A stretch of 64,000 nt of DNA from Schmidtea polychroa (GCA_044892525.1 CM097887.1:11222001-11286000), one strand, 5' to 3'; counted from the first letter of the stretch, positions 1 to 24,571 are shown. The notes: generated by a model not told the origin, from the sequence alone. Translations and numbers: made by a program.

Positions 1-2489
1 GCTTTTGAAGATCTGTTTGCTGTATTTAATGATATTATTTGTTGCTAAAGACCTTTCGATTTGATTCTCCACTGCTATCTATATGAATACTAAAAAATTG
101 TATTTTCATGCAAGAATTCCAGGCTCTTGAGGATCTGTTTGCTGTATTTAATGATATCATTTGTTGCTAAAGACGTTTCGATTTGATTCTCCACTGCTAT
201 CTATATGAATACTAAAAAATCGTATTTTCATGCCAGAATTCCAGGCTTTTGAAGATCTGTTTGCTGTATTTAATGATATTATTTGTTGCTAAAGACCTTT
301 CGATTTGATTCTCCACTGCTATCTATATGAATACTAAAAAATTGTATTTTCATGCAAGAATTCCAGGCTCTTGAGGATCTGTTTGCTGTATTTAATGATA
401 TCATTTGTTGCTAAAGACGTTTCGATTTGATTCTCCACTGCTATCTATATGAATACTAAAAAATTGTATTTTCATGCCAGAATTCCAGGCTCTTGAGAAT
501 CTGTTTGCTGTATTTAATGATATTATTTGTTGCTAAAGACCTTTGATTCTCCACTGCTATCTAAATGAATACTAAAAAATTGTATTTTCATGCAAGAATC
601 CAGGCTCTTGAGGATCTGTTTGCTGTATTTAATGATATCATTTGTTGCTAAAGACCTTTCGATTTGATTCTCCAAAAGAAGGGGGATTTAGGGGTAATAT
701 TTATTATGAACTCTCAACTTCACAAGCTATATTAAATTGATGTAAAATTAGTAAGTGGCAATAGCACTTGACTGTACTGTGCTTTATATTTAATGAAAAA
801 TTAGCAGCAAATGTATTGATGGAACCTTCAATTTCACAGATCTTGAAGTTTTACTTAGTTCAACAAATGAAGCACCCTATACTGCGTCAGGTTATATTTG
901 GTCTGTTGCTGCCACTGCTATCTATATGAATACTAAAAAATTGTATTTTCATGCAAGAATTCCAGGCTCTTGAGGATCTGCTTGCTGTATTTAATGATAT
1001 CATTTGTTGCTAAAGACGTTTCGATTTGATTCTCCACTGCTATCTATATGAATACTAAAAAATTGTATTTTCATTCAAGAATTCCAGGCTCTTGAGGATC
1101 TGTTTGCTGTATTTAATGATATCATTTGTTGCTAAAGACCTTTCGATTTGATTCTCCAAAAAACCTTAGAAGGGGAATAATAATTCTAGCAGTGATTTAG
1201 GGGTAATATTTATTATGAACTCTCAACTTCACAAGCTATATTTATTGGATAATGTAAAATTAGTGAGGGGCAATAGCACTTGACTGTACTGTGCGTTCTA
1301 TTTAAAAGAAAATCAGCGGCAAATGTATTGATGGAACCTTCAATTTCACAGATCTTGAAGTTTTACTTAGTTCAACAGATGAAGCACCCTATACTGCGTC
1401 AGGTTATATTTGGTCTGTTGCTGCCACTGCTATCTATATGAATACTAAAAAATCGTATTTTCATGCCAGAATTCCAGGCTTTTGAAGATCTGTTTGCTGT
1501 ATTTAATGATATTATTTGTTGCTAAAGACCTTTCGATTTGATTCTCCACTGCTATCTATATGAATACTAAAAAATTGTATTTTCATGCAAGAATTCCAGG
1601 CTCTTGAGGATCTGTTTGCTGTATTTAATGATATCATTTGTTGCTAAAGACGTTTCGATTTGATTCTCCACTGCTATCTATATGAATACTAAAAAATTGT
1701 ATTTTCATGCAAGAATTCCAAGCTCTTGAGGATCTGTTTGCTGTATTTAATGATATCATTTGTTGCTAAAGACGTTTCGATTTGATTCTCCACTGCTATC
1801 TATATGAATACTAAAAAATTGTATTTTCATGCAAGAATTCCAAGCTCTTGAGGATCTGTTTGCTGTATTTAATGATATCATTTGTTGCTAAAGACGTTTC
1901 GATTTGATTCTCCACTGCTATCTATATGAATACTAAAAAATCGTATTTTCATGCCAGAATTCCAGGCTTTTGAAGATCTGTTTGCTGTATTTAATGATAT
2001 TATTTGTTGCTAAAGACCTTTCGATTTGATTCTCCACTGCTATCTATATGAATACTAAAAAATTGTATTTTCATGCAAGAATTCCAGGCTCTTGAGGATC
2101 TGTTTGCTGTATTTAATGATATCATTTGTTGCTAAAGACGTTTCGATTTGATTCTCCACTGCTATCTATATGAATACTAAAAAATTGTATTTTCATGCCA
2201 GAATTCCAGGCTCTTGAGGATCTGTTTGCTGTATTTAATGATATTATTTGTTGCTAAAGACCTTTGATTCTCCACTGCTATCTAAATGAATACTAAAAAA
2301 TTGTATTTTCATGCAAGAATCCAGGCTCTTGAGGATCTGTTTGCTGTATTTAATGATATTATTTGTTGCTAAAGACCTTTCGATTTGATTCTCCAAAAGA
2401 AGGGGGATTTAGGGGTAATATTTATTATGAACTCTCAACTTCACAAGCTATATTAAATTGATGTAAAATTAGTAAGTGGCAATAGCACT
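1..2489. repeat. Complex satellite array, left block (runs off the window start)
   Basis: Tandem ~122-bp A monomer (CTGCTATCTATATGAATAC...GAATTCCAGG...GATTCTCCA; 116- and 121-bp variants). Longer B monomers occur at ~674, ~1158 and ~2396; the last is interrupted by the retrotransposon. Confidence 0.97.
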
Positions 2490-2527
2490 CTTTCTCTTTC
2501 AAAAATTTTTCTCGTGCAAGAATAAAA

Positions 2528-4435
2528 ATGAACATTTATGAAATTATCAAAACCGCCGTTAACCAGTGCTTAGCAGAATTGCTGCTATACAACATTCATA
2601 GCACTGGGCAGAAATCGGAGGATCTAAAGAACTACAATATTGAAGATACCAAAACTCCGGAAACAAATAATTCAACTTATATTGCAAAATCATCTAATTT
2701 TATTTCTAACAGGAATAACGACCAACCTCTGTCTGCTAGAACAGAGCCGTGCAAGCGCCCGGACGAACTCCATGCCAGAGACACTGAGAAGATGACCCAT
2801 AATGCCCCATCATCTAACCAGGATCCCAATCAGAGAACTTCATTGAACCAATGGACCCAAGGAACAAAGCCGAAGATTTTTAATGACAATCATGCCAAGG
2901 ATATTGGAAGAATGACTTCTAATATCCAATCTCTAAGACATGAGGATATAAATACAGCCGAACAGATATTTTCAATCAAAGAGGATGGGAGAATGACCTC
3001 CAATACAGTACAGGCAGACCCGGATGACTGGAAAACCTACTGCCCTGCTAGGAAGATCTATCTGCTATATAATAAAGGTAATTATAGTCAGAATTTGTAT
3101 AATAATAAATTAAATTATAACCTGAATTTAAATGATAATCTAAATAATATCTTAAATAAATTAAATTATAATGTATATAATAATGAAACAAACTGTAATT
3201 TGTATAATAATTTAAATAAATTAAATTTTAATAACTTAAACTTGAAATTAAAAGATAATTTAAATAATAATTTATATCCTACTAACTACTGTAATAATAA
3301 TTCTATATATAATGACCAATTTAATCTTAACTCAAATCTATATAGTAATAAAAATTTAAATAATAATTTATATCCTACTAATTACTATAATAATAATTCT
3401 ATATTTAATGACCAATTTAATTTTAATTCAAATCTATATAGTAATAAAAATCTAAATAATAATTTATATCCTACTAATTACTATAATAATAATTCTATAT
3501 TTAATGACCAATTTAATTTTAATTCAAATATATATCAATATATCTCCCAACATGATAAAAAACACGTAGACAATTTTAATACTTTTTTATCTAATAATAT
3601 TCATGATTTAATTATCTATAATTTAAAGAATGAGATAAATAATGAGAACGTAGTTTATAATTTAAAAAATGATTTATTTAATTTAATTAATAATAATATT
3701 GATGCTATTTCAACAAAGAATTTTTCTTTGTTTAAATATCATCAATATACTCACTCTTTCTCTTTCAAAAATTTTTCTCGTGTTCCTTCGGAACACGATA
3801 ATACACGCAGCTCGCCGGCCTACGGCCGACTCGCTCCTCACAAATCTGTAGCTTTCAGCGAAAATATTATTACTACTGATTATACCTCAGCCTCTTATAA
3901 GAACTCTGACCCAGAATACCTCCATAACATTGGTGAAATCGGAACCAATTTTTTTAGGGAAATTAAAAAACAATTTCTCCATCTTAAATCCTCAAACCCA
4001 CAAATGCTAACCGCCACCTATATCTGTTTCTTCAAGGACCTTAATAGCAATTACCGTAAACTGATAGATATCCTTGAACCATCCAATAGCGACAAACCAC
4101 CTTTTGATCTGAGGCTTATACCCTACCACAATAATAAGTATCTCATTAAAAATTATAATTCCATATTAACAAACCTTAATAATTACCTCTTTAAGGATAT
4201 CCATACCCAATTAAAAAATAACAATAAAAAAGTAAACTCTTTTATTGTTAGAAATTTCTTCTATATACTATATATTAACTACCGACAATTGACCTCAATA
4301 TTATTTGAGAAGGCAACTCTTGCAGATGATGTAGATGCAGAAATCTCACCTACAAATGATAAAAATAATCCTAACTCAAAAGAAATCAACAATATTAATA
4401 CCGAAAATTCTACATCTCTTGCAGGCATTGCATAA
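2528..4435 (+). CDS. Retrotransposon N-terminal ORF segment, Asn-rich low-complexity protein (635 aa), function unknown
   Basis: 635 stop-free codons in very AT-rich DNA. In frame with the two downstream ORFs; ends at TAA 4433-4435. Confidence 0.62.
   Translation: MNIYEIIKTAVNQCLAELLLYNIHSTGQKSEDLKNYNIEDTKTPETNNSTYIAKSSNFISNRNNDQPLSARTEPCKRPDELHARDTEKMTHNAPSSNQDPNQRTSLNQWTQGTKPKIFNDNHAKDIGRMTSNIQSLRHEDINTAEQIFSIKEDGRMTSNTVQADPDDWKTYCPARKIYLLYNKGNYSQNLYNNKLNYNLNLNDNLNNILNKLNYNVYNNETNCNLYNNLNKLNFNNLNLKLKDNLNNNLYPTNYCNNNSIYNDQFNLNSNLYSNKNLNNNLYPTNYYNNNSIFNDQFNFNSNLYSNKNLNNNLYPTNYYNNNSIFNDQFNFNSNIYQYISQHDKKHVDNFNTFLSNNIHDLIIYNLKNEINNENVVYNLKNDLFNLINNNIDAISTKNFSLFKYHQYTHSFSFKNFSRVPSEHDNTRSSPAYGRLAPHKSVAFSENIITTDYTSASYKNSDPEYLHNIGEIGTNFFREIKKQFLHLKSSNPQMLTATYICFFKDLNSNYRKLIDILEPSNSDKPPFDLRLIPYHNNKYLIKNYNSILTNLNNYLFKDIHTQLKNNNKKVNSFIVRNFFYILYINYRQLTSILFEKATLADDVDAEISPTNDKNNPNSKEINNINTENSTSLAGIA
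3257..3537 (+). repeat. 96-bp (32-aa) in-frame tandem repeat, ~3 copies
   Basis: NLNNNLYPTNYYNNNSIFNDQFNFNSNLYSNK repeated with starts near 3257, 3353 and 3449. Confidence 0.93.
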
Positions 4436-4480
4436 CCTGATATTTTACCCACTCTCCCAGCTAAAACTACTATCATTAAT

Positions 4481-6220
4481 ATGACAAATAATAGATATGC
4501 CTCCCTGATAGACAATATGGACATGGAATATACCACAAATAATTCTACTAAAAAAAATATCTCATTAATTAATAAAGTAACATGTAGTAGACCACATTTT
4601 TCCAAGCCTATTCCGAATCTTTCTTGTCCTAAGGTTATCGGACCCAATGAAAAACTCCTTAAAAAGGTTAGATATATTAAATCTAATACTATGAATAATG
4701 CCTCCTCTTCCCACACCCCAGAAGATACTTCATCATGCCCTAGCTTATCTGAACTATCTTATGACCCTGACAGTGACTCCTCCTGTTCGGAGATCAGTAT
4801 CGACACTTCCTCCTCGAAACACTCCAAAATTAGTATAGATACCTCACATTATAGTTGCTACTTTGACGACACAATAGAATCCCCTATATCAGACCGAGAG
4901 GATGTTAGACCTCCAGAATACCCAAGCGATCTATTCAACTCCGACTGTGATGACGTCGTACTCTCTAGCAGTACCTCTGACCAAAGCTCTATCAATGAAC
5001 CTCCTTCCTCAAACGCCCCTCTCTTAGCCCTTCCTACTAACAACCCCTCACCTCCTCTGCCCGAGAAATCCAACTCTTATAACCTTACCCTACCTACCGA
5101 CTCAATCGAGGAACCCAAAATATATCCCTCAGTTAGACCATCACCGCTAGATGACTCTGCAACCATAACCCCTGTTAGGCAAGAAAAGAAAACCTACAAC
5201 TTTCATTCCTCCGAAAACATTGACCTTGATAGATCATACCCTATTCCTAAAAGGCTTATCCCTGTCGAAAACACTGAACGCAATTCACCAAACCTTATAA
5301 ACCTGAAGGACACTATACCCTCTGCTAAAGAGACACCAAAATACGCAACCACATCCACTCCCATCCACCACAGAAAAGACATAAAATTCCAAAAAAGCCT
5401 AGAGGTTAGAGGTAAAAAGTACACTCTAAAACCCCCCACCTTAGACCTCATAAAGACGAGAAAAACTATAATAAATAAAGATACAATGTCCAAAGACATA
5501 AATGATGAAATATTATACTACTTTGATCTACGGGGCAAATTACAGTGCCGTGGATGCCACCATACTTCTTTTTGTGGACAAATTTCTGCCACTGATATTG
5601 ATAGGATTAGGTCACACGCCCAAGAAATTCACAACATCGCTATAACCTACGACTCTTTGATCGACTGCCACCAATGTAGACCCAAAGGGGAAGGAAGCCG
5701 ATCTATCTTGAACACCATCACCCTTAGAAACCTTTATAACCACATCGACCAATTTGAGCACCACTGTAGTGTAAACAAGGACTTCCTTAAGACTATTACC
5801 CTGAAAATTACTTCCGCAAACCGTTTTTTATGCCACAATCTAAACAAAAACTGCAACAAGTGCTTCCAATCCTTCGACATTGACACACCCTTAGATACAA
5901 TAAATACACATATGATAAAACATCATAAAAATTTAAAATTCGACATCAATCTAAAAATTAATTGCTTCTGTGGAGAGTGGATAAAATATCAGGACTCCAA
6001 AAACCATATTGAGGATCATCACCCCAATAAGGAGACCTCGAATAGCCCCGTGAATAATGACTACAGTAATAACGTAAATATTAATACTAAAAATAACCTT
6101 TTTAATGATATTCTGGATACGCAAGAGGCAATCCTATCACCTCTAAATAATGAAATCATAAATAGGGACATACCTGACAACATCCTATTTACTAATAATA
6201 TTGATAGGGAGGCTGCATGA
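4481..6220 (+). CDS. Retrotransposon ORF segment: Ser/Pro-rich linker plus four C2H2-type zinc fingers
   Basis: CRGC...HAQEIH, CHQC...HIDQFEH, CNKC...HMIKH and CFC...HIEDH at 5546-6022. The frame is open from 4436; it ends at TGA 6218-6220. Confidence 0.8.
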   Translation: MTNNRYASLIDNMDMEYTTNNSTKKNISLINKVTCSRPHFSKPIPNLSCPKVIGPNEKLLKKVRYIKSNTMNNASSSHTPEDTSSCPSLSELSYDPDSDSSCSEISIDTSSSKHSKISIDTSHYSCYFDDTIESPISDREDVRPPEYPSDLFNSDCDDVVLSSSTSDQSSINEPPSSNAPLLALPTNNPSPPLPEKSNSYNLTLPTDSIEEPKIYPSVRPSPLDDSATITPVRQEKKTYNFHSSENIDLDRSYPIPKRLIPVENTERNSPNLINLKDTIPSAKETPKYATTSTPIHHRKDIKFQKSLEVRGKKYTLKPPTLDLIKTRKTIINKDTMSKDINDEILYYFDLRGKLQCRGCHHTSFCGQISATDIDRIRSHAQEIHNIAITYDSLIDCHQCRPKGEGSRSILNTITLRNLYNHIDQFEHHCSVNKDFLKTITLKITSANRFLCHNLNKNCNKCFQSFDIDTPLDTINTHMIKHHKNLKFDINLKINCFCGEWIKYQDSKNHIEDHHPNKETSNSPVNNDYSNNVNINTKNNLFNDILDTQEAILSPLNNEIINRDIPDNILFTNNIDREAA

Positions 6221-6382
6221 TGGTCACAACACTCTATCAAGGCCTTCATCTTTTCCTTTGCCATCAGACCTACCACCATCTTCGTCGACCCCTATATAGG
6301 TAACGCTCTTATACAACACAACTACAAGACCTTCTTTGAAACCTTTCCTTTCAAAGACTTCTCTGATTGGAACGAGATCATC

Positions 6383-9300
6383 ATGCCAATGTGTCATGCT
6401 AAAGACAATTGGTTCTTCTTCTTCCTAGACAAACGCCGAAAGCTGGCAGTACTTATTGACCCTACAACCGATGAAAGTCCTTCTATCCACCTTTCACTTG
6501 CCAATAGTATCCTCGAAACCATCTTAGACCTACAGAAAATTGTCTCCCCTATCACTATCCATCTTCAATACCCCGAATATCCTAGATGCAGCACTCCTAA
6601 TGAATCAGCCTTCTTTATATGCCACATGATTGAATGCCTCATGAAAAATGATAGGATCACCTCACCTAACATCCAGAATATGATTAATAGGATTAAAATT
6701 GTAATTAAAAAAATACTAAATAACAGAATGGCTAGTGATGATGTGCGAAAATATCGCCCATTTATCAGTAGCCTTATAATTAATCTAAATAATGATACAA
6801 CAGACTGTGAATCAGTCCTTTGCGAAATTAATAAAATTAATGAAAACATTAACCCTAAAAAATACATCAATAAAATTCCTGCAGACATCACCCATAAAGC
6901 GAGGAAAAACGCCAATGAACTACTATTTGTCAAAAGAAATAGGTATAAGTTTAATCCAAAGGAGGAAATAAGCAAAATATTAAATAATGAAACCTGTCTT
7001 CAAAAACCCACTATGAAAAATCTTCTAAAACTCTTTGCAGGAGGCATAACCACCTGCCAAACTTTCTCCATAAACCTTCAATGCTCATATCCTGAAACTT
7101 ACTCCTCCACTCCATTTGATCTTGATGATATTAAATACATCCTATCCCAACTTGCAAACACTGCCCCTGGCCTTGACCTTATTACTCTTGCCAACTGGAA
7201 GAAAATATCGCCGGATCATGAACTAATACTATCGATATGCAACAATATCCAACGGAACTCCATATGCCCACCCTCTTGGAAAACCTTCCGTACTAAACTT
7301 ATCCTCAAAGCTGGGAAAAATGAAATTAGCCATGAAGCCAGCTCATGGAGACCCATATCCATTATGAACACCATCTATCGTATCTTCTCCTCTCTCCTCA
7401 ACAATAGACTCCTGGGGTGGATTAAGGAAGGTAATCTTATCTCTAACAATCAAAAAGCGATCGGTGCTCCTGATGGCTGCGCTGAACACAACTTTATCCT
7501 TCAACTTATCAAAGATGCCTCTAATCGCGATAAATCTGACCTACATATTATTTGGTTAGACATCACTGATGCCTTTGGTTCCTTACCACATGACCTTATC
7601 TGGTACACACTATCTAAAATGGGCCTTCACCCAAACTCCATCCAACTTATTAAAAGCATGTACGACCAAGTTAACACCATCTTCGACTGTGAAGGGGAAA
7701 CCTCGCCTTCTGTTCCGATTCTTAAAGGGGTAAAACAAGGATGCCCCTTATCTATGACTCTCTTCTGTCTCTCAATAGACTTCATTATTAAAAACATCCT
7801 AATCTCTCACCCCTTTATCCTAGGAGAAATGAATATAGGTATCCTCGCATACGCTGACGACATAGTACTTATATCTGACTCTTACCCCTCAATCAACTCT
7901 GCCCTACTTGAAACTATCCGCCTTGCTTCACTAGCCAACCTCAAATTTAAACCCTCTAAATCTGGCTACTTCCATCTTAACCATAACTCAAGCTACCACC
8001 CCATAAAACTTTATAACGAGATCATTCCTAAGGTAGATGACTCAAACTTCTACAGATACCTAGGGGTTGACTTCTCCCTCAAAAAACGACACAATATTGA
8101 TGAAACACTCGAATGTGCTCTCACGGATACTGAAAAAATTCTCAAATCACACCTTCATCCATCCCAGAAAATTAATGCCTTTAAAATCTTTATCCACTCA
8201 CGTCTTATCTTCCCCTTCCGCAACTGTGAAATACTCCACAACATTCTTGAATCCCATAAAAACAACATCATAAAAGATAGGAACCCACAAAAAGGCTTTG
8301 ACAATAAGATCAGAAAACTAATAAAAATAGCTCTCGGAGATCGGTTACTCCAAATAAATAATAACTTTCTCTATGCCTCGATAAAAATGGGTGGAATGGG
8401 TCTCACCTCAGCCATTGATGAATATATAATTCAAGGCATTGTACACCTCTCTCGTGCACTAAACTCTACAGATACATCCTTCCGCAACCTTATCCTCTCA
8501 GAACTTGCACTAGCAAGAGGCCAGGGCAATCTTGAAGCAGCTCTCTACTGGATTAATGGCAATACTTCAAAATCATTCCAGCACCGCTCAATATTTCTAA
8601 AATTTAAAAAATCTGCTGACCTACTCCGTCGGAAATATGGAATTCATGCTAAAATCCTCCTACTAGACAACTCATATCAGCTCGAAATCCGATACAAAGA
8701 CAGGATAAATTACTTCCAAAGTGACAATGTAAACACTATCTCCTCTGAAATTCATTCCATCATTAGCCTCATACACACTGAAAAATGGGCCCTCCTAACG
8801 TACCAAGGCCATATTGCAAAATCAATTTGTAATAGCACCACAGCTGGCTACCTCATAAAAACCGATATTCTGACCGATGCCCAATTCTTCTTCCTTATCA
8901 GAGCACGTAACAACCTTCTAGAACTAAACTTTACGCCCCATAGACTTAAATCCAAAAAATCTATACAATGTAGACAATGTAACTCACACCCTGAAACCCA
9001 AGCGCATATCTTTAACCACTGTCCAGCAAAGATAAACGCGCGTAGAAACAAACACTCCCGGGTCTTAGATGCCGTTAGTGAATTCCTCCTTAACCTCAAC
9101 TTCTACTTAGACATCGAAATAACTCCTCTTGGCATACCCACTCTGCTCAAACCCGACCTCATTATAAGATCCATGAGGAACAACAATAACCACATCCTAG
9201 ATATCAAAGTCCCCTATGAACAGAGAGAAAACTTTAAAAGGGTGACCAATGATAACTATGCAAAATATGCCAACCTGGCTATCCAAATTGAAAAGGCACA

Positions 9301-9487
9301 TAAAGTCAAAACCACCATCTCCGCACTTGTAATTGGCACCCTTGGCTCCTGGGACTCTAACAATGACCAGATACTTAGAAAAATAGGACTCTCTAAATCT
9401 GAAATTAAAGGACTGTCACAGAAAGCCTGCACAGCTGCAGTGGTGAGTAGCTACCACATACTTAGAGAACATACCCTTAAGGATTAA
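6383..9487 (+). CDS. Reverse transcriptase with CCHC knuckle and restriction-like endonuclease; N-terminal Ulp1-like domain (frame open from 6221)
   Basis: RT motifs APGLD, WRPISI, WLDITDAFGSLPH, GVKQGCPLS, YADD (~7850) and YRYLGV. CRQC-x8-H-x4-C at ~8969. RLE motifs HSRV, PDL (9152), DIK (9200), YAKY and GTLGSW. Confidence 0.97.
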   Translation: MPMCHAKDNWFFFFLDKRRKLAVLIDPTTDESPSIHLSLANSILETILDLQKIVSPITIHLQYPEYPRCSTPNESAFFICHMIECLMKNDRITSPNIQNMINRIKIVIKKILNNRMASDDVRKYRPFISSLIINLNNDTTDCESVLCEINKINENINPKKYINKIPADITHKARKNANELLFVKRNRYKFNPKEEISKILNNETCLQKPTMKNLLKLFAGGITTCQTFSINLQCSYPETYSSTPFDLDDIKYILSQLANTAPGLDLITLANWKKISPDHELILSICNNIQRNSICPPSWKTFRTKLILKAGKNEISHEASSWRPISIMNTIYRIFSSLLNNRLLGWIKEGNLISNNQKAIGAPDGCAEHNFILQLIKDASNRDKSDLHIIWLDITDAFGSLPHDLIWYTLSKMGLHPNSIQLIKSMYDQVNTIFDCEGETSPSVPILKGVKQGCPLSMTLFCLSIDFIIKNILISHPFILGEMNIGILAYADDIVLISDSYPSINSALLETIRLASLANLKFKPSKSGYFHLNHNSSYHPIKLYNEIIPKVDDSNFYRYLGVDFSLKKRHNIDETLECALTDTEKILKSHLHPSQKINAFKIFIHSRLIFPFRNCEILHNILESHKNNIIKDRNPQKGFDNKIRKLIKIALGDRLLQINNNFLYASIKMGGMGLTSAIDEYIIQGIVHLSRALNSTDTSFRNLILSELALARGQGNLEAALYWINGNTSKSFQHRSIFLKFKKSADLLRRKYGIHAKILLLDNSYQLEIRYKDRINYFQSDNVNTISSEIHSIISLIHTEKWALLTYQGHIAKSICNSTTAGYLIKTDILTDAQFFFLIRARNNLLELNFTPHRLKSKKSIQCRQCNSHPETQAHIFNHCPAKINARRNKHSRVLDAVSEFLLNLNFYLDIEITPLGIPTLLKPDLIIRSMRNNNNHILDIKVPYEQRENFKRVTNDNYAKYANLAIQIEKAHKVKTTISALVIGTLGSWDSNNDQILRKIGLSKSEIKGLSQKACTAAVVSSYHILREHTLKD

Positions 9488-9736
9488 TACTTTACTATTA
9501 TATATACCTACCTAAACAAAGCATTACCATATTATATATTATACATTATCGTTATACTATAAATAGCTCATAAATAAACTGTCTTGTAAAACTACTAAAC
9601 AATACTATATAACTATATCCACAACTAAAGCAGCCTAACCTCCTTTGGATTAACCTTACAAAACCTATAACTAAATAATTACAAATAACTAACCTACTAT
9701 AGCCAACTAATAAATAAATAACTAACTACCTATTAC

Positions 9737-10087
9737 NNNNNNNNNNNNNNNNNNNNNNNNNNNNNNNNNNNNNNNNNNNNNNNNNNNNNNNNNNNNNNNN
9801 NNNNNNNNNNNNNNNNNNNNNNNNNNNNNNNNNNNNNNNNNNNNNNNNNNNNNNNNNNNNNNNNNNNNNNNNNNNNNNNNNNNNNNNNNNNNNNNNNNNN
9901 NNNNNNNNNNNNNNNNNNNNNNNNNNNNNNNNNNNNNNNNNNNNNNNNNNNNNNNNNNNNNNNNNNNNNNNNNNNNNNNNNNNNNNNNNNNNNNNNNNNN
10001 NNNNNNNNNNNNNNNNNNNNNNNNNNNNNNNNNNNNNNNNNNNNNNNNNNNNNNNNNNNNNNNNNNNNNNNNNNNNNNNNNNNNNNN
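9737..10087. other. Assembly gap (N run)
   Basis: 351 N. Confidence 1.
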
Positions 10088-10536
10088 ATTACTATATATA
10101 TCATTATTTATCACTACGGTACTAATTGTAATTGTCAATCACCGAATGGGTTAATGTAGGAACCCTTGTAGGGGTTCTGCCTATTTGGTGGTCTTTTTAG
10201 TTGTCCATATCAATATTATAATCATTATTACTATACTATGATCTACTATTATTGCTACTATTATTACTATTATTCCAATATTACTATTATTACCCCAACC
10301 TCCACCACCTCCTTTTAATGTATACTATAATAAGTAGCTATTATCGCTATAAACCTCGCAAGGGAGCCTTCCTGCTCCAACATTTTACATTTTAGTAACC
10401 CAATCACAACTGAATCACTCCTATGATCAAATTCCGGAACACACTAATATCCCCACTGATCCTATGCTCACTGCAAATGGCCGACATCCACAAATATCTA
10501 CCACATCATTGAACAACCTGCGACCAAACCTCGGAA

Positions 10537-10750
10537 CCTATGACCTCAACAGATACCCGATCTCTCCCACCACAAAGAAGATTTGCCATATAATATAAAA
10601 AGATCCTGAGAATCTCTTCGCACTCCGGTCCAACTACTACATCCTACAATGATCTCAACTACTACCTGATCTCTCCAACCACAATAGAAGATTTGCGATA
10701 AATGAAAGTCCTGAGAATCTCACCACAGTCCGGTCCAATTACTCCACTCT
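10537..10750 (+). repeat. ~109-bp diverged tandem duplication in the retroelement 3' region
   Basis: Two copies of TGA(C/T)CTCAAC...GATCTCTCC...AGAAGATTTGC...CCTGAGAATCTC...CCGGTCCAA. Confidence 0.8.
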
Positions 10751-11063
10751 ATTACAAACCCGCTATCATCACCTGAGACCTGCTACAGAATATCTATATC
10801 TATATCTATATATGTACACCAAAGCATAACCTTATTTACAATCAGTTTATCTCTACTACAACCTAAATTTCAAGGACATATAGATCAAGGACTTTAGATT
10901 TCAAAACATATCCACCTGAAACCACATTTGTGAATGATGCGGGCATCCATATGCCGACATCCCAAGAATATTGAAATAAAAGCTACAGAACCCAAAGGAT
11001 GAGAATCAATCCCTCTTTAGGCCAAGTGGCCAGCTATCTACATTTGAATAAAATAAAATTTGA

Positions 11064-11089
11064 TTTTTTTTTTTTTTTTTTTTTTTTTT
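11064..11089 (+). repeat. (T)26 tract at the retroelement/satellite junction
   Basis: Read directly; preceded by AATAAAATAAAATTTGA. Confidence 0.95.
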
Positions 11090-14000
11090 GCTTTATATTT
11101 AATGAAAAATTAGCAGCAAATGTATTGATGGAACCTTCAATTTCACAGATCTTGAAGTTTTACTTAGTTCAACAAATGAAGCACCCTATACTGCGTCAGG
11201 TTATATTTGGTCTGTTGCTGCCACTGCTATCTATATGAATACTAAAAAATCGTATTTTCATGCCAGAATTCCAGGCTTTTGAAGATCTGTTTGCTGTATT
11301 TAATGATATTATTTGTTGCTAAAGACCTTTCGATTTGATTCTCCACTGCTATCTATATGAATACTAAAAAATTGTATTTTCATGCAAGAATTCCAGGCTC
11401 TTGAGGATCTGTTTGCTGTATTTAATGATATCATTTGTTGCTAAAGACGTTTCGATTTGATTCTCCACTGCTATCTATATGAATACTAAAAAATTGTATT
11501 TTCATTCAAGAATTCCAGGCTCTTGAGGATCTATTTGCTGTATTTAATGATATCATTTGTTGCTAAAGACCTTTCGATTTGATTCTCCAAAAAACCTTAG
11601 AAGGGGAATAATAATTCTAGCAGTGATTTAGGGGTAATATTTATTATGAACTCTCAACTTCACAAGCTATATTTATTGGATAATGTAAAATTAGTGAGGG
11701 GCAATAGCACTTGACTGTACTGTGCGTTCTATTTAAAAGAAAATCAGCGGCAAATGTATTGATGGAACCTTCAATTTCAGAGATCTTGAAGTTTTACTTA
11801 GTTCAACAGGTGAAGCACCCTATACTGCGTCAGGTTATATTTGGTCTGTTGCTGCCACTGCTATCTATATGAATATTAAAAAATTGTATTTTCATGCCAG
11901 AATTCCAGGCTTTTGAGGATCTGTTTGCTGTATTTAATGATATTATTTGTTGCTAAAGACCTTTCGATTTGATTCTCCACTGTTATCTATATGAATACTA
12001 AAAAATTGTATTTTCATGCCAGAATTCCAGGCTCTTGAGGATCTGTTTGCTGTATTTAATGATATTATTTGTTGCTAAAGACCTTTGATTCTCCACTGCT
12101 ATCTAAATGAATACTAAAAAATTGTATTTTCATTCAAGAATTCCAGGCTCTTGAGGATCTGTTTGCTGTATTTAATGATATCATTTGTTGCTAAAGACCT
12201 TTCGATTTGATTCTCCAAAAAACCTTAGAAGGGGAATAATAATTCTAGCAGTGATTTAGGGGTAATATTTATTATGAACTCTCAACTTCACAAGCTATAT
12301 TTATTGGATAATGTAAAATTAGTGAGGGGCAATAGCACTTGACTGTACTGTGCGTTCTATTTAAAAGAAAATCAGCGGCAAATGTATTGATGGAACCTTC
12401 AATTTCACAGATCTTGAAGTTTTACTTAGTTCAACAGATGAAGCACCCTATACTGCGTCAGGTTATATTTGGTCTGTTGCTGCCACTGCTATCTATATGA
12501 ATACTAAAAAATCGTATTTTCATGCCAGAATTCCAGGCTTTTGAAGATCTGTTTGCTGTATTTAATGATATTATTTGTTGCTAAAGACGTTTCGATTTGA
12601 TTCTCCACTGCTATCTATATGAATACTAAAAAATTGTATTTTCATGCCAGAATTCCAGGCTCTTGAGAATCTGTTTGCTGTATTTAATGATATTATTTGT
12701 TGCTAAAGACCTTTGATTCTCCACTGCTATCTATATGAATACTAAAAAATTGTATTTTCATGCCAGAATTCCAGGCTCTTGAGAATCTGTTTGCTGTATT
12801 TAATGATATCATTTGTTGCTAAAGACGTTTCGATTTGATTCTCCACTGCTATCTATATGAATACTAAAAAATTGTATTTTCATGCAAGAATCCAGGCTCT
12901 TGAGGATCTGTTTGCTGTATTTAATGATATCATTTGTTGCTAAAGACCTTTGATTCTCCACTGCTATCTATATGAATACTAAAAAATTGTATTTTCATGC
13001 AAGAATTCCAGGCTCTTGAGGATCTGTTTACTGTATATAATGATATCATTTGTTGCTAAAGACCTTTCGATTTGATTCTTCACTGCTATCTATATGAATA
13101 CTAAAAAATCGTATTTTCATGCCAGAATTCCAGGCTTTTGAAGATCTGTTTGCTGTATTTAATGATATTATTTGTTGCTAAAGACCTTTGATTCTCCACT
13201 GCTATCTAAATGAATACTAAAAAATTGTATTTTCATGCAAGAAACCAGGCTCTTGAGGATCTATTTGCTGTATTTAATGATATCATTTGTTGCTAAAGAC
13301 CTTTCGATTTGATTCTCCAAAAGAAGGGGGATTTAGGGGTAATATTTATTATGAACTCTCAACTTCACAAGCTATATTAAATTGATGTAAAATTAGTAAG
13401 TGGCAATAGCACTTGACTGTACTGTGCTTTATATTTAATGAAAAATTAGCAGCAAATGTATTGATGGAACCTTCAATTTCACAGATCTTGAAGTTTTACT
13501 TATTTCAACAAATGAAGCACCCTATACTGCGTCAGGTTATATTTGGTCTGTTGCTGCCACTGCTATCTATATGAATACTAAAAAATTGTATTTTCATGCA
13601 AGAATTCCAGGCTCTTGAGGATCTGCTTGCTGTATTTAATGATATCATTTGTTGCTAAAGACCTTTGATTCTCCACTGCTATCTATATGAATACTAAAAA
13701 ATTGTATTTTCATGCAAGAATTCCAGGCTCTTGAGGATCTGCTTGCATTATATAATGATATCATTTGTTGCTAAAGACCTTTCGATTTGATTCTTCACTG
13801 CTATCTATATGAATACTAAAAAATTGTATTTTCATGCAAGAATTCCAGGCTCTTGAGGATCTGTTTGCTGTATTTAATGATATCATTTGTTGCTAAAGAC
13901 CTTTCGATTTGATTCTCCACTGCTATCTATATGAATACTAAAAAATTGTATTTTCATTCAAGAATTCCAGGCTCTTGAGGATCTGTTTGCTGTATTTAAT

Positions 14001-17000
14001 GATATCATTTGTTGCTAAAGACCTTTCGATTTGATTCTCCAAAAAACCTTAGAAGGGGAATAATAATTCTAGCAGTGATTTAGGGGTAATATTTATTATG
14101 AACTCTCAACTTCACAAGCTATATTTATTGGATAATGTAAAATTAGTGAGGGGCAATAGCACTTGACTGTACTGTGCGTTCTATTTAAAAGAAAATCAGC
14201 GGCAAATGTATTGATGGAACCTTCAATTTCACAGATCTTGAAGTTTTACTTAGTTCAACAGATGAAGCACCCTATACTGCGTCAGGTTATATTTGGTCTG
14301 TTGCTGCCACTGCTATCTATATGAATACTAAAAAATCGTATTTTCATGCCAGAATTCCAGGCTTTTGAAGATCTGTTTGCTGTATTTAATGATATTATTT
14401 GTTGCTAAAGACCTTTCGATTTGATTCTCCACTGCTATCTATATGAATACTAAAAAATTGTATTTTCATGCAAGAATTCCAGGCTCTTGAGAATCTGTTT
14501 GCTGTATTTAATGATATCATTTGTTGCTAAAGACCTTTCGATTTGATTCTCCACTGCTATCTATATGAATACTAAAAAATTGTATTTTCATGCAAGAATT
14601 CCAAGCTCTTGAGGATCTGTTTGCTGTATATAATGATATCATTTGTTGCTAAAGACCTTTCGATTTGATTCTTCACTGCTATCTATATGAATACTAAAAA
14701 ATCGTATTTTCATGCCAGAATCCCAGGCTTTTGAAGATCTGTTTGCTGTATTTAATGATATTATTTGTTGCTAAAGACCTTTGATTCTCCACTGCTATCT
14801 AAATGAATACTAAAAAATTGTATTTTCATGCAAGAATCCAGGCTCTTGAGGATCTATTTGCTGTATTTAATGATATCATTTGTTGCTAAAGACCTTTCGA
14901 TTTGAATCTCCAAAAGAAGGGGGATTTAGGGGTAATATTTATTATGAACTCTCAACTTCACAAGCTATATTAAATTGATGTAAAATTAGTAAGTGGCAAT
15001 AGCACTTGACTGTACTGTGCTTTATATTTAATGAAAAATTAGCAGCAAATGTATTGATGGAACCTTCAATTTCACAGATCTTGAAGTTTTACTTAGTTCA
15101 ACAAATGAAGCACCCTATACTGCGTCAGGTTATATTTGGTCTGTTGCTGCCACTGCTATCTATATGAATACTAAAAAATTGTATTTTCATGCAAGAATTC
15201 CAGGCTCTTGAGGATCTGCTTGCTGTATTTAATGATATCATTTGTTGCTAAAGACCTTTGATTCTCCACTGCTATCTATATGAATACTAAAAAATTGTAT
15301 TTTCATGCAAGAATTCCAGGCTCTTGAGGATCTGCTTGCTGTATATAATGATATCATTTGTTGCTAAAGACCTTTCGATTTGATTCTCCACTGCTATCTA
15401 TATGAATACTAAAAAATTGTATTTTCATGCAAGAATTCCAGGCTCTTGAGAATCTGTTTGCTGTATTTAATGATATCATTTGTTGCTAAAGACCTTTCGA
15501 TTTGATTCTCCACTGCTATCTATATGAATACTAAAAAATTGTATTTTCATGCAAGAATTCCAAGCTCTTGAGGATCTGTTTGCTGTATATAATGATATCA
15601 TTTGTTGCTAAAGACCTTTCGATTTGATTCTTCACTGCTATCTATATGAATACTAAAAAATCGTATTTTCATGCCAGAATTCCAGGCTTTTGAAGATCTG
15701 TTTGCTGTATTTAATGATATTATTTGTTGCTAAAGACCTTTGATTCTCCACTGCTATCTAAATGAATACTAAAAAATTGTATTTTCATGCAAGAATCCAG
15801 GCTCTTGAGGATCTATTTGCTGTATTTAATGATATCATTTGTTGCTAAAGACCTTTCGATTTGATTCTCCAAAAGAAGGGGGATTTAGGGGTAATATTTA
15901 TTATGAACTCTCAACTTCACAAGCTATATTAAATTGATGTAAAATTAGTAAGTGGCAATAGCACTTGACTGTACTGTGCTTTATATTTAATGAAAAATTA
16001 GCAGCAAATGTATTGATGGAACCTTCAATTTCACAGATCTTGAAGTTTTACTTAGTTCAATTTAAAAGAAAATCAGCGGCAAATGTATTGATGGAACCTT
16101 CAATTTCACAGATCTTGAAGTTTTACTTAGTTCAACAGATGAAGCACCCTATACTGCGTCAGGTTATATTTGGTCTGTTGCTGCCACTGCTATCTATATG
16201 AATACTAAAAAATCGTATTTTCATGCCAGAATTCCAGGCTTTTGAAGATCTGTTTGCTGTATTTAATGATATTATTTGTTGCTAAAGACCTTTCGATTTG
16301 ATTCTCCACTGCTATCTATATGAATACTAAAAAATTGTATTTTCATGCAAGAATTCCAGGCTCTTGAGGATCTGTTTGCTGTATTTAATGATATCATTTG
16401 TTGCTAAAGACGTTTCGATTTGATTCTCCACTGCTATCTATATGAATACTAAAAAATTGTATTTTCATTCAAGAATTCCAGGCTCTTGAGGATCTATTTG
16501 CTGTATTTAATGATATCATTTGTTGCTAAAGACCTTTCGATTTGATTCTCCAAAAAACCTTAGAAGGGGAATAATAATTCTAGCAGTGATTTAGGGGTAA
16601 TATTTATTATGAACTCTCAACTTCACAAGCTATATTTATTGGATAATGTAAAATTAGTGAGGGGCAATAGCACTTGACTGTACTGTGCGTTCTATTTAAA
16701 AGAAAATCAGCGGCAAATGTATTGATGGAACCTTCAATTTCAGAGATCTTGAAGTTTTACTTAGTTCAACAGGTGAAGCACCCTATACTGCGTCAGGTTA
16801 TATTTGGTCTGTTGCTGCCACTGCTATCTATATGAATATTAAAAAATTGTATTTTCATGCCAGAATTCCAGGCTTTTGAGGATCTGTTTGCTGTATTTAA
16901 TGATATTATTTGTTGCTAAAGACCTTTCGATTTGATTCTCCACTGTTATCTATATGAATACTAAAAAATTGTATTTTCATGCCAGAATTCCAGGCTCTTG

Positions 17001-20000
17001 AGGATCTGTTTGCTGTATTTAATGATATTATTTGTTGCTAAAGACCTTTGATTCTCCACTGCTATCTAAATGAATACTAAAAAATTGTATTTTCATTCAA
17101 GAATTCCAGGCTCTTGAGGATCTGTTTGCTGTATTTAATGATATCATTTGTTGCTAAAGACCTTTCGATTTGATTCTCCAAAAAACCTTAGAAGGGGAAT
17201 AATAATTCTAGCAGTGATTTAGGGGTAATATTTATTATGAACTCTCAACTTCACAAGCTATATTTATTGGATAATGTAAAATTAGTGAGGGGCAATAGCA
17301 CTTGACTGTACTGTGCGTTCTATTTAAAAGAAAATCAGCGGCAAATGTATTGATGGAACCTTCAATTTCACAGATCTTGAAGTTTTACTTAGTTCAACAG
17401 ATGAAGCACCCTATACTGCGTCAGGTTATATTTGGTCTGTTGCTGCCACTGCTATCTATATGAATACTAAAAAATCGTATTTTCATGCCAGAATTCCAGG
17501 CTTTTGAAGATCTGTTTGCTGTATTTAATGATATTATTTGTTGCTAAAGACGTTTCGATTTGATTCTCCACTGCTATCTATATGAATACTAAAAAATTGT
17601 ATTTTCATGCCAGAATTCCAGGCTCTTGAGAATCTGTTTGCTGTATTTAATGATATTATTTGTTGCTAAAGACCTTTGATTCTCCACTGCTATCTATATG
17701 AATACTAAAAAATTGTATTTTCATGCCAGAATTCCAGGCTCTTGAGAATCTGTTTGCTGTATTTAATGATATTATTTGTTGCTAAAGACGTTTCGATTTG
17801 ATTCTCCACTGCTATCTATATGAATACTAAAAAATTGTATTTTCATGCAAGAATCCAGGCTCTTGAGGATCTGTTTGCTGTATTTAATGATATCATTTGT
17901 TGCTAAAGACGTTTCGATTTGATTCTCCACTGCTATCTATATGAATACTAAAAAATTGTATTTTCATGCAAGAATCCAGGCTCTTGAGGATCTGTTTGCT
18001 GTATTTAATGATATCATTTGTTGCTAAAGACCTTTGATTCTCCACTGCTATCTATATGAATACTAAAAAATTGTATTTTCATGCAAGAATTCCAGGCTCT
18101 TGAGGATCTGCTTACTGTATATAATGATATCATTTGTTGCTAAAGACCTTTCGATTTGATTCTTCACTGCTATCTATATGAATACTAAAAAATCGTATTT
18201 TCATGCCAGAATTCCAGGCTTTTGAAGATCTGTTTGCTGTATTTAATGATATTATTTGTTGCTAAAGACCTTTGATTCTCCACTGCTATCTAAATGAATA
18301 CTAAAAAATTGTATTTTCATGCAAGAAACCAGGCTCTTGAGGATCTATTTGCTGTATTTAATGATATCATTTGTTGCTAAAGACCTTTCGATTTGATTCT
18401 CCAAAAGAAGGGGGATTTAGGGGTAATATTTATTATGAACTCTCAACTTCACAAGCTATATTAAATTGATGTAAAATTAGTAAGTGGCAATAGCACTTGA
18501 CTGTACTGTGCTTTATATTTAATGAAAAATTAGCAGCAAATGTATTGATGGAACCTTCAATTTCACAGATCTTGAAGTTTTACTTAGTTCAACAAATGAA
18601 GCACCCTATACTGCGTCAGGTTATATTTGGTCTGTTGCTGCCACTGCTATCTATATGAATACTAAAAAATTGTATTTTCATGCAAGAATTCCAGGCTCTT
18701 GAGGATCTGCTTGCTGTATTTAATGATATCATTTGTTGCTAAAGACCTTTGATTCTCCACTGCTATCTATATGAATACTAAAAAATTGTATTTTCATGCA
18801 AGAATTCCAGGCTCTTGAGGATCTGCTTGCTGTATATAATGATATCATTTGTTGCTAAAGACCTTTCGATTTGATTCTTCACTGCTATCTATATGAATAC
18901 TAAAAAATTGTATTTTCATGCAAGAATTCCAGGCTCTTGAGGATCTGTTTGCTGTATTTAATGATATCATTTGTTGCTAAAGACCTTTCGATTTGATTCT
19001 CCACTGCTATCTATATGAATACTAAAAAATTGTATTTTCATTCAAGAATTCCAGGCTCTTGAGGATCTGTTTGCTGTATTTAATGATATCATTTGTTGCT
19101 AAAGACCTTTCGATTTGATTCTCCAAAAAACCTTAGAAGGGGAATAATAATTCTAGCAGTGATTTAGGGGTAATATTTATTATGAACTCTCAACTTCACA
19201 AGCTATATTTATTGGATAATGTAAAATTAGTGAGGGGCAATAGCACTTGACTGTACTGTGCGTTCTATTTAAAAGAAAATCAGCGGCAAATGTATTGATG
19301 GAACCTTCAATTTCACAGATCTTGAAGTTTTACTTAGTTCAACAGATGAAGCACCCTATACTGCGTCAGGTTATATTTGGTCTGTTGCTGCCACTGCTAT
19401 CTATATGAATACTAAAAAATCGTATTTTCATGCCAGAATTCCAGGCTTTTGAAGATCTGTTTGCTGTATTTAATGATATTATTTGTTGCTAAAGACCTTT
19501 CGATTTGATTCTCCACTGCTATCTATATGAATACTAAAAAATTGTATTTTCATGCAAGAATTCCAGGCTCTTGAGAATCTGTTTGCTGTATTTAATGATA
19601 TCATTTGTTGCTAAAGACCTTTCGATTTGATTCTCCACTGCTATCTATATGAATACTAAAAAATTGTATTTTCATGCAAGAATTCCAAGCTCTTGAGGAT
19701 CTGTTTGCTGTATATAATGATATCATTTGTTGCTAAAGACCTTTCGATTTGATTCTTCACTGCTATCTATATGAATACTAAAAAATCGTATTTTCATGCC
19801 AGAATCCCAGGCTTTTGAAGATCTGTTTGCTGTATTTAATGATATTATTTGTTGCTAAAGACCTTTGATTCTCCACTGCTATCTAAATGAATACTAAAAA
19901 ATTGTATTTTCATGCAAGAATCCAGGCTCTTGAGGATCTATTTGCTGTATTTAATGATATCATTTGTTGCTAAAGACCTTTCGATTTGAATCTCCAAAAG

Positions 20001-23000: not shown

Positions 23001-24571
23001 AAAGACCTTTCGATTTGATTCTCCACTGCTATCTATATGAATACTAAAAAATTGTATTTTCATGCAAGAATTCCAGGCTCTTGAGGATCTGTTTGCTGTA
23101 TTTAATGATATCATTTGTTGCTAAAGACCTTTGATTCTCCACTGCTATCTAAATGAATACTAAAAAATTGTATTTTCATTCAAGAATTCCAGGCTCTTGA
23201 GGATCTGCTTGTTGTATTTAATGATATCATTTGTAGCTAAATACCTTTCGATTTGACTCTCCACTGCTATCTATATGAATACTAAAAAATTGTATTTTCA
23301 TGCAAGAATTCCAGGCTCTTGAGAATCTGTTTGCTGTATTTAATGATATCATTTGTTGCTAAAGACCTTTCGATTTGATTCTCCACTGCTATCTATATGA
23401 ATACTAAAAAATTGTATTTTCATGCAAGAATTCCAAGCTCTTGAGGATCTGTTTGCTGTATATAATGATATCATTTGTTGCTAAAGACCTTTCGATTTGA
23501 TTCTTCACTGCTATCTATATGAATACTAAAAAATCGTATTTTCATGCCAGAATTCCAGGCTTTTGAAGATCTGTTTGCTGTATTTAATGATATTATTTGT
23601 TGCTAAAGACCTTTGATTCTCCACTGCTATCTAAATGAATACTAAAAAATTGTATTTTCATGCAAGAATCCAGGCTCTTGAGGATCTATTTGCTGTATTT
23701 AATGATATCATTTGTTGCTAAAGACCTTTCGATTTGATTCTCCAAAAGAAGGGGGATTTAGGGGTAATATTTATTATGAACTCTCAACTTCACAAGCTAT
23801 ATTAAATTGATGTAAAATTAGTAAGTGGCAATAGCACTTGACTGTACTGTGCTTTATATTTAATGAAAAATTAGCAGCAAATGTATTGATGGAACCTTCA
23901 ATTTCACAGATCTTGAAGTTTTACTTAGTTCAATTTAAAAGAAAATCAGCGGCAAATGTATTGATGGAACCTTCAATTTCACAGATCTTGAAGTTTTACT
24001 TAGTTCAACAGATGAAGCACCCTATACTGCGTCAGGTTATATTTGGTCTGTTGCTGCCACTGCTATCTATATGAATACTAAAAAATCGTATTTTCATGCC
24101 AGAATTCCAGGCTTTTGAAGATCTGTTTGCTGTATTTAATGATATTATTTGTTGCTAAAGACCTTTCGATTTGATTCTCCACTGCTATCTATATGAATAC
24201 TAAAAAATTGTATTTTCATGCAAGAATTCCAGGCTCTTGAGGATCTGTTTGCTGTATTTAATGATATCATTTGTTGCTAAAGACCTTTGATTCTCCACTG
24301 CTATCTAAATGAATACTAAAAAATTGTATTTTCATTCAAGAATTCCAGGCTCTTGAGGATCTGCTTGTTGTATTTAATGATATCATTTGTAGCTAAATAC
24401 CTTTCGATTTGACTCTCCACTGCTATCTATATGAATACTAAAAAATTGTATTTTCATGCAAGAATTCCAGGCTCTTGAGAATCTGTTTGCTGTATTTAAT
24501 GATATCATTTGTTGCTAAAGACCTTTCGATTTGATTCTCCAAAAAACCTTAGAAGGGGAATAATAATTCTA
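11089..24571. repeat. Complex satellite array, right block, with ~5-kb higher-order duplication
   Basis: Same A and B monomers. ~11100-16050 is repeated at ~16060-21135 (offset 4961-5084 bp), sharing rare variants CAGAGATCTT, CAACAGGTGA and CTGTTATC. The array ends abruptly at ...TAATAATTCTA. Confidence 0.97.

Follow-up and report, generated by a model that had tools for sequence, protein, structure and literature searches.

In this work we analysed a tandem array of short repeats in the planarian Schmidtea polychroa, part of which lies in a stretch of 64,000 nucleotides (GCA_044892525.1, CM097887.1:11222001-11286000; hereafter the window, in which positions are counted from the first nucleotide, C3 coordinates being those of the whole of chromosome 3). 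The array is very probably a non-coding tandem repeat, present at a single locus, that descends from a rearranged pseudogene of a large, lineage-expanded family of STE-group-like Ser/Thr kinases. Three lines of evidence carry this conclusion: the repeated units align with exons and introns of the kinase genes of the same genome, their two halves do so in opposite orientations, and a unique copy of the rearranged pseudogene, which we call the founder, is kept at the upstream edge of the array.

Kinase-derived parts of the repeat

The genome contains at least 40 intron-containing paralogues of the STE-group-like family that carry the exon coding for helix alphaE. A search with positions 780–1270 of the window returned about 35 places with 72–75% identity, and a protein search for the kinase family gave 87 matches, clustered at C1 263–264.9 Mb, C4 86.7–92.9 Mb, C3 2.4–4.9 and 8.43–8.49 Mb, and C2 27, 119 and 128–137 Mb. 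Thirty-seven paralogue loci were taken for a comparison exon by exon. The same three exons were found by tblastn in most of them, and locus L001, together with 34 others, has three exons with canonical splice sites and PF00069 matches with E values of 1e-9 to 1e-19. In the family, exon 1 reads GSGGFGEVYKCKG..FMEYLSQ, exon 2 reads GSLEDQI..LATNDVIKYSKQILEGLEFLH..IIHRDLK and exon 3 reads PANLLI..DFG..APEV..SADIWSVGATVINMITG. L001 itself (C3:8,493,777-8,494,877) is an intron-containing kinase gene in which the three relevant exons (GSKIGSGGFGEVYKCKG...FMEYLSQ, GSLEDQITRDRGLATNDVIKYSKQILEGLEFLHEIAIIHRDLK and (P)ANLLIDLENNIKLADFGLSRPL...APEV...SADIWSVGAIVINMITG) each match PF00069 within that same range of E values. 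The solved structures in the PDB nearest to the family are those of STE20, MAP4K and MAP3K kinases.

The repeat is built of A units and of B units, whose left and right parts (B-left and B-right) have different origins. On the plus strand, positions 783–823 correspond to the 3' end of intron 2, with a decayed 3' splice site, followed by the first codons of exon 3 (78% identity to L001 5248–5289), which read (P)AANVLM for the PANLLI of subdomain VIb. An internal deletion that removed the DFG motif joins the start of exon 3 straight to its 3' part (subdomains VIII–IX), which lies at 810–934 on the plus strand, is 77% identical to L005 5001–5111 and 73% to L001 5460–5572, and reads GTFNFTDLEVLLSSTNEAPYTASGYIWSVAATAIYMNT; the plus-strand exon-3 sequence reads GTFNF..EV...PYTASGYIWSVAATAIYMNT. 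The last 22 nt of this relic are also the first 22 nt of the A unit. At 935–939, as seen in the alignment of window 883–1000 with L037 5663–5798, the locus of the founder, lies an inversion junction, where 18 nt present in the founder are missing; this deletion took the end of exon 3 (GGTTAG) and the antisense HRD codons and is shared by every A unit. Beyond it, on the minus strand, positions 940–1034 are a relic of exon 2 from the end of subdomain V through alphaE (subdomain VIa), 84% identical to L001 5105–5205 and reading ENQIETSLATNDIIKYSKQILKSLEFLHENTI. A second exon-2 relic with a complete 5' end, at 1062–1165 on the minus strand, is 79% identical to L001 exon 2 (5105–5205), scores 34.6 bits with a hidden Markov model (HMM) of the family and reads GFLENQIERSLATNDIIKYSKQILKSLEFLNENTI; at the end of subdomain V, the GSLEDQI of the gene has become GFLENQI in the repeat. 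It is followed by the last 93 nt of intron 1 (1166–1258, minus strand; window 1258–1062 is 79% identical to L001 5001–5205), with a decayed 3' splice site, CTAA for the CTAG of the gene, and then by a linker of about 38 nt (1259–1296) where one monomer meets the next.

The A unit thus consists of 22 nt of plus-sense sequence from the end of exon 3 and about 95 nt of minus-sense exon 2. The first one in this part of the window (122 bp, 912–1033) is a chimera of the exon-3 end (912–934, plus) and of exon 2 (940–1034, minus) and spans the old inversion junction. From these alignments we read the whole monomer as antisense exon 2 and intron 1 joined, at the old inversion junction, to sense intron 2 and a truncated exon 3. 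Nucleotide homology extends over introns, and relics of introns 1 and 2 with their splice sites lie at the positions expected from the genes, as in a pseudogene relic. With the founder included, relics of all three introns (1, 2 and 3) are found, hence the source was not a processed, retro-copied pseudogene.

The first-pass annotation had read positions 780–1270 in another way, as a minus-strand kinase segment decayed by frameshifts, cut from a single exon and running collinearly from subdomain IV to the APE motif. The peptides on which it was based are all present in a six-frame translation, on the reverse complement (LILHYPINIA, FIINITPKSLLELL, LATNDIIKYSKQILKSLEFLHENTI, IHIDSSGSN, AV*GAS and EGSINTFAA), and the alphaE match is truly homologous on the minus strand, carries the weight that had been placed on it (z = 25, 36.9 bits) and is the sole string above chance in that orientation. 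The other strings have different origins. Those taken for subdomains IV (HPNIV) and V (EY..SL..LL) fall in B-left, which aligns with intron 1. IHID, taken for the catalytic loop, is the antisense of the exon-3 codons ATC TAT ATG AAT (I-Y-M-N), the real HRD being kept by the founder and lost from the A units by deletion; SSGSN, AV*GAS and GSINTFAA, taken for the rest of the catalytic loop, for DFG and for the APE region, are the antisense of VAATA, EAPYTAS and AANVLMEP, and DFG is deleted. B-right aligns with exon 3 on the plus strand only, and outside alphaE no minus-strand piece does better than shuffled sequence: minus-strand B-left and B-right gave nothing above noise against subdomains IV and V, DFG or APE (best E at least 1.7). 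Since the two halves of the monomer are in opposite orientations, it is not a collinear minus-strand segment, and we regard a single-exon origin of that kind as exceedingly unlikely. The kinase descent of the monomers is upheld, and the continuous run of subdomains from one exon gives way to rearranged, intron-containing DNA.

Significance of the kinase homology

Dinucleotide shuffles served as controls for these comparisons. With blastn, the monomer matches more than 30 paralogues, intron sequence included, with 75% identity over about 205 nt (E about 1e-34), and when the relics are aligned piece by piece their DNA is 73–84% identical to the paralogues, with z values against shuffles of up to 38. 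Compared with a kinase gene of the same genome, the minus strand of the A unit reaches a local score of 51, versus 13.2 +/- 1.5 for the shuffles (z = 25), in reverse orientation only; B-left also matches in reverse only (z = 15.6), over intron 1, and B-right in forward orientation only (z = 8.4; forward score 25, reverse 14, shuffle maximum 20). In tblastn, the A units show about 64–68% amino-acid identity, with E values down to 3e-9 per unit. The family HMM, built from 23 intact paralogues and controlled with 300 shuffles, matches the minus-strand A pieces at its positions 80–116 (36.9 bits for window 940–1034, E 1e-11; shuffle maximum 6.3 bits) and the plus-strand B-right pieces, including window 810–934, at its positions 171–208 (24.9 bits, E 5e-8), and gave no scoring match on any other satellite piece.

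The general kinase profile behaves differently, as the best PF00069 match among the satellite pieces, that of the A unit on the minus strand, has an E value of just 0.019 (14.8 bits versus a cut-off of 31.7), and B-right has no match. Such a score is what might be expected if the kinase resemblance were a product of chance in AT-rich repetitive DNA, an explanation that retains a negligible probability in view of z values of 25–38 against dinucleotide shuffles, of the blastn matches to over 30 paralogues including their introns, and of 36.9 versus 6.3 bits with the family HMM. The first-pass annotation had proposed a search with PF00069 and shuffled controls as the check on kinase origin. With Pfam the A and B pieces do not give a significant match, and with the family HMM the separation from shuffles is clear; the kinase origin is visible only with the genome's own paralogues, and PF00069 used alone would have led to its being wrongly rejected. 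Descent from a kinase gene does not mean kinase coding capacity: no open reading frame (ORF) of at least 120 amino acids is present in the array, stop codons interrupt every unit, HRD is deleted from the A units and DFG is lost.

The founder copy at the upstream edge of the array

The founder occupies C3:11,187,179-11,187,934, that is positions 5179–5934 of L037 (C3:11,182,001-11,192,000), and is unique and non-repeated. It represents a kinase pseudogene on the minus strand, with an in-place inversion of the intron 2–exon 3 segment (it reads ...LEFLQRNAIFHRDI). Its first part, L037 5179–5545, corresponds in reverse complement to the region directly after exon 3 (L001 5954–5581); the second, 5549–5726, corresponds in forward orientation to intron 2 and exon 3 (L001 5228–5584); the third, 5723–5934, corresponds again in reverse complement to exon 2 and intron 1 (L001 5218–5001) and reads ENQIERSLATNYVIKYNKQILEDLEFLQRNAIFHRDI in frame. 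Within the second part an internal deletion joins PGNIFM to GTFNFTAPEV, and the segment ends with EAPYSVSADIWSLVATVIYMITG (stop), then GGTTAG. When the genome was searched with the founder, the reverse/forward/reverse pattern was found against every paralogue. The breakpoints are reciprocal to within about 2–9 nt, so that the simplest reading is a single in-place inversion in a minus-strand member of the family. An origin from two genes placed tail to tail, followed by two deletions, was also considered and is less parsimonious with breakpoints that are reciprocal to this degree.

Several properties place the founder before the repeats. It retains gene-homologous sequence that has no counterpart in the interior monomers, namely the HRD codons (as FHRDI, which the founder alone keeps and which is absent from all A units), the GGTTAG donor site, the whole of intron 2 and a flank from intron 3, and it can be aligned with the genes for a further 366 nt outside the repeated unit, as far as intron 3. 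In exon 3 the founder is 75–79% identical to the genes, more than the monomers are (64–68%). In a tree of 32 paralogue loci and three satellite rows, founder and monomers form one clade (support 100/99), in which the founder is basal and has a short branch. Because of this additional gene sequence, the closer exon 3 and the basal short branch, we consider the founder ancestral to the array. Its structure is not an artefact of assembly, since contigs of single-copy depth from three sequencing runs of two studies (X1, X3 and X6) bridge both inversion junctions in independent read sets. The 19 substitutions in the bridging contig of run X6 suggest that it comes from another strain or haplotype.

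Monomer, B unit and founder were each searched against the whole genome, and no closer or single-copy parent was found. The highest identity of the founder to any paralogue, 89%, is confined to a conserved stretch directly after exon 3. This stretch of about 135 nt (L001 5581–5716; L037 5406–5545) is 81–89% identical between founder and paralogues, compared with about 74% for exon 2, and might be a small unrecognized exon (e.g. KPLKAKFILNYW) or a regulatory element.

The same searches bear on the possibility that a transposon of the Helitron or Pack type captured a kinase fragment, or that the fragment was retro-copied, the array being an internal repeat of such an element. The window is rich in transposons, with a non-LTR (long terminal repeat) retrotransposon in the array, a hAT domain and reverse-transcriptase fragments, and Helitrons reportedly capture gene fragments that then form tandem arrays. 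However, the intron sequences show that the source was not a processed copy; among the matches listed in the 781 Mb searched, 35-mers of the units occur at the array locus only, with no dispersed copies of the junctions; and elsewhere in the genome the founder matches kinase paralogues only, at 89% identity or less. In addition, the homology of the founder to the genes continues for 366 nt past the repeated unit, and no transposon protein domains are present in the immediate flanks of the array. Capture by a transposon is therefore highly unlikely. The first-pass annotation had suggested looking for a single-copy parental kinase gene or a kinase-carrying transposon, and neither was found. The array is better explained by the rearranged pseudogene still present at its edge.

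Organization of the array and its surroundings

The full array extends over C3:11,187,549-11,246,571, at 11.2 Mb of a 144.6-Mb chromosome, and holds 288 A units and about 61 B units, all head to tail on the plus strand. Two stretches of it lie in the window, both on the plus strand. The first (1–2489) continues for about 34.5 kb upstream of the window, to C3:11,187,549, and is made of A units of 122 or 116 bp and A+B units of 361, 390 or 436 bp, all in one orientation; the second (11091–24571) stops within a B-left segment, derived from intron 1, and is followed by unrelated sequence. A units are homogeneous, with a median identity of 96.7%. A 35-mer from B-left has 59 matches in the genome, all forward and all within C3:11.188–11.246 Mb. 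A 35-mer from the A unit has 248, all forward, a total that fits the 288 A units counted in the array; the 100 of them that are listed, 148 being unlisted, all lie within the array locus. The array thus has the many homogenized head-to-tail copies in one orientation that define a satellite, and lacks the very high copy number and multiple loci of classical satellites, as it forms a single locus of about 50 kb. An Rfam search of window 1–2600 returned no family.

An organization into A and B units, and an ancestral A+B unit of about 390 bp, had been proposed in the first-pass annotation. The organization, with A units of 122 bp, is real. The unit of about 390 bp that was duplicated in tandem spans the inversion junction and was not cut from a kinase exon as had been thought. 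Re-amplification through a TGG microhomology, also proposed, was borne out for the 122-bp piece: the minus-strand TGG corresponds to a plus-strand CCA, and these 3 bp are common to the A-to-A, B-to-A and A-to-B junctions (912–914, 1034–1036 and 1156–1158), the second A unit (122 bp, 1034–1155) being bounded by the last two.

Several variants of the units recur. The 436-bp monomer has an internal duplication of 75 bp in B-right (TRF period 75, 1.9 copies, 97% matches), found at window 15994–16135, 21078–21219, 22711–22852 and 23867–24008; the 361-bp monomer has a deletion of 29 nt in B-left, and the 116-bp A unit lacks CGATTT. These recurring variants mark blocks of a higher order, about 5 kb long. 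For the A-unit contigs, runs X1 and X3 give a summed k-mer depth of about 600 times the single-copy depth of the founder, compared with 288 A units assembled, a depth that does not equal a copy number; the array may be larger than assembled, or be present on several haplotypes.

The two stretches of the array are separated by a non-LTR retrotransposon with an RVT_1 reverse transcriptase (2490–11090, plus strand), which sits in a B unit and at whose insertion site 12 target nucleotides (tgactgtactgt) are missing. Its plus-strand ORFs span 2528–9487, the third of them containing RVT_1. A run of 26 T residues is present at its 3' junction (11064–11089), on the same strand as the ORFs, where a poly(A) would be expected. 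Downstream of the array, further transposon relics are an ORF with a hAT C-terminal dimerization domain at 39162–39662 (E 4e-13) and two adjacent ORFs at 58108–58946, the second with an RVT_1 fragment.

Some features of the kinase family itself were also observed. Exon 3 is of a long type in L001 (5273–5575) and in L006–L013, with two APE-like motifs (..LEFLAPEVLEHLD..GTVIFMAPEVLQQ..), and of a short type with a single APE-like motif in L002, L005 and L020–L025, which suggests that the long form may result from an internal duplication of the activation-segment/P+1 region. The clusters at C1:264.60–264.89 Mb and C4:88.4–92.9 Mb are sub-terminal, with a spacing of about 15–45 kb. Some pairs of paralogues (L003/L013, L001/L038) are identical over the compared region; such identity indicates very recent segmental duplication, between chromosomes too.

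Discussion

The properties of the founder and of the repeats lead us to propose the following birth of the array, of which the first three steps are read directly from the founder and the later ones from the comparison of copies. A member of the kinase family on the minus strand at C3:11.19 Mb underwent an in-place inversion that began in intron 2 and reached a few bases beyond exon 3; one break directly follows the HRD codons in exon 2, the other the exon-3 donor site. A deletion inside exon 3 joined PANLLI-like codons to GT.NF.APE, with loss of DFG. A piece of about 390 bp, made up of inverted intron-2 and exon-3 sequence, the antisense exon 2 and a 93-nt part of intron 1, would have been duplicated in tandem, after which an 18-nt deletion at the inversion junction would have removed HRD. 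The 122-bp stretch across this junction would have been re-amplified by slippage or unequal exchange at the CCA microhomology, duplication of higher-order blocks would have brought the array to 288 A and about 61 B units, and the non-LTR element would have inserted last.

Some observations weigh against this scheme. The closest paralogues reach about 76% identity in exon 2 and intron 1, and, for the founder, 79% in exon 3. The donor gene cannot be named, as the satellite lineage is, from the sequences compared, only loosely placed in the family tree, with open forks: the satellite clade forms a deep lineage of its own, to which L026 (C3:4.63 Mb) is nearest by path. Neither exon 1 nor any further part of intron 1 is present past the downstream end of the array (window 24571), hence the pseudogene was already truncated or the remainder was lost. 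The linker of 38 nt between monomers is unexplained, with no significant match in the 37 paralogue loci. The order of the inversion and of the first duplication is deduced from a single founder copy. Finally, contigs of A units in one run of uncertain type, possibly RNA, bear on the inertness of the array, and transcription or small RNAs are possible.

This last observation is related to a functional explanation, in which transcripts of the array, carrying antisense exon 2 and sense exon 3, would feed a control of the paralogues of the type exerted by Piwi-interacting RNAs (piRNAs). The array does contain hundreds of antisense exon-2 copies, its A units are homogeneous (96.7% median identity), and the run in question contains 43–58% of the monomer words. 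On the other hand, with an identity of about 75–84% to the paralogues, perfect matches of at least 20 nt are few or absent, and the monomer words are absent from the six other putative RNA runs (0/6); the run in question, X5, shows only A-unit contigs, at low depth, for which carry-over of DNA is possible, and homogeneity is expected from recent amplification alone. That such transcripts would act on the paralogues, as Su(Ste) repeats do on Stellate in Drosophila, is very improbable, and there is an equally slight chance that the array would be kept as a small-RNA or decoy locus that dampens a fast-expanding kinase family, a planarian counterpart of the Su(Ste)/Stellate system. The array most likely has no sequence-specific function.

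The seed of a tandem repeat is seldom identifiable, and an un-amplified founder next to its array is rarer still. Here the array shows tandem repeat seeding from unique genic DNA, and the steps of its birth (inversion, deletions, duplications, amplification at CCA, formation of blocks and insertion of a retrotransposon) can all be followed to the single base at one locus, which makes it a compact natural instance of how a satellite arises from genic DNA, in a genome whose repeat biology is little described. It also calls for caution in annotation, as generic domain profiles missed an origin that the paralogues of the same genome showed, and as convincing motif readings (IHID, DFG, APE) were artefacts of antisense or intron sequence.

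Compared with its own kinase family (e.g. L001), the array is 75–84% identical in DNA over exon 2, the 93-nt intron-1 relic, intron 2 and both ends of exon 3, with splice-site relics at the same positions; unlike the genes, its copies are rearranged, lack HRD, DFG and exon 1, and contain stops in every unit. The Stellate and Su(Ste) repeats of Drosophila derive from the gene of a kinase subunit, CK2-beta, and the array resembles them in the tandem amplification of gene-derived sequence, antisense gene fragments included. Su(Ste) repeats have kept a high identity to their targets, produce piRNAs and regulate Stellate, whereas the array described here is about 75% identical to the paralogues, has no coding capacity and is known from its DNA sequence. 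In the sister species Schmidtea mediterranea, large tandem repeats comprise a 158-mer, a 159-mer and chromosome-specific pericentromeric repeats of 424–766 bp (PMC13309565), and a nested tandem organization has been reported in Schmidtea genomes (PMC11410931). By their description, the S. mediterranea arrays are distinct from the present one, as they are megabase-sized, have other unit lengths and have no reported kinase origin (PMC13309565). Nothing specific on exon-derived satellites was found in the literature, and the papers on planarian repeats describe other repeats. Head-to-tail units, a re-amplified sub-unit, higher-order blocks, high identity and an identifiable older seed are features that the array has in common with other tandem repeats seeded from unique or genic sequence. 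It differs from them in that its seed is an intron-containing kinase pseudogene with an intragenic inversion, in its size of about 50 kb at a single locus and in the founder kept at its edge. It is not a new kind of element, but an unusually well-documented new example of a known process.

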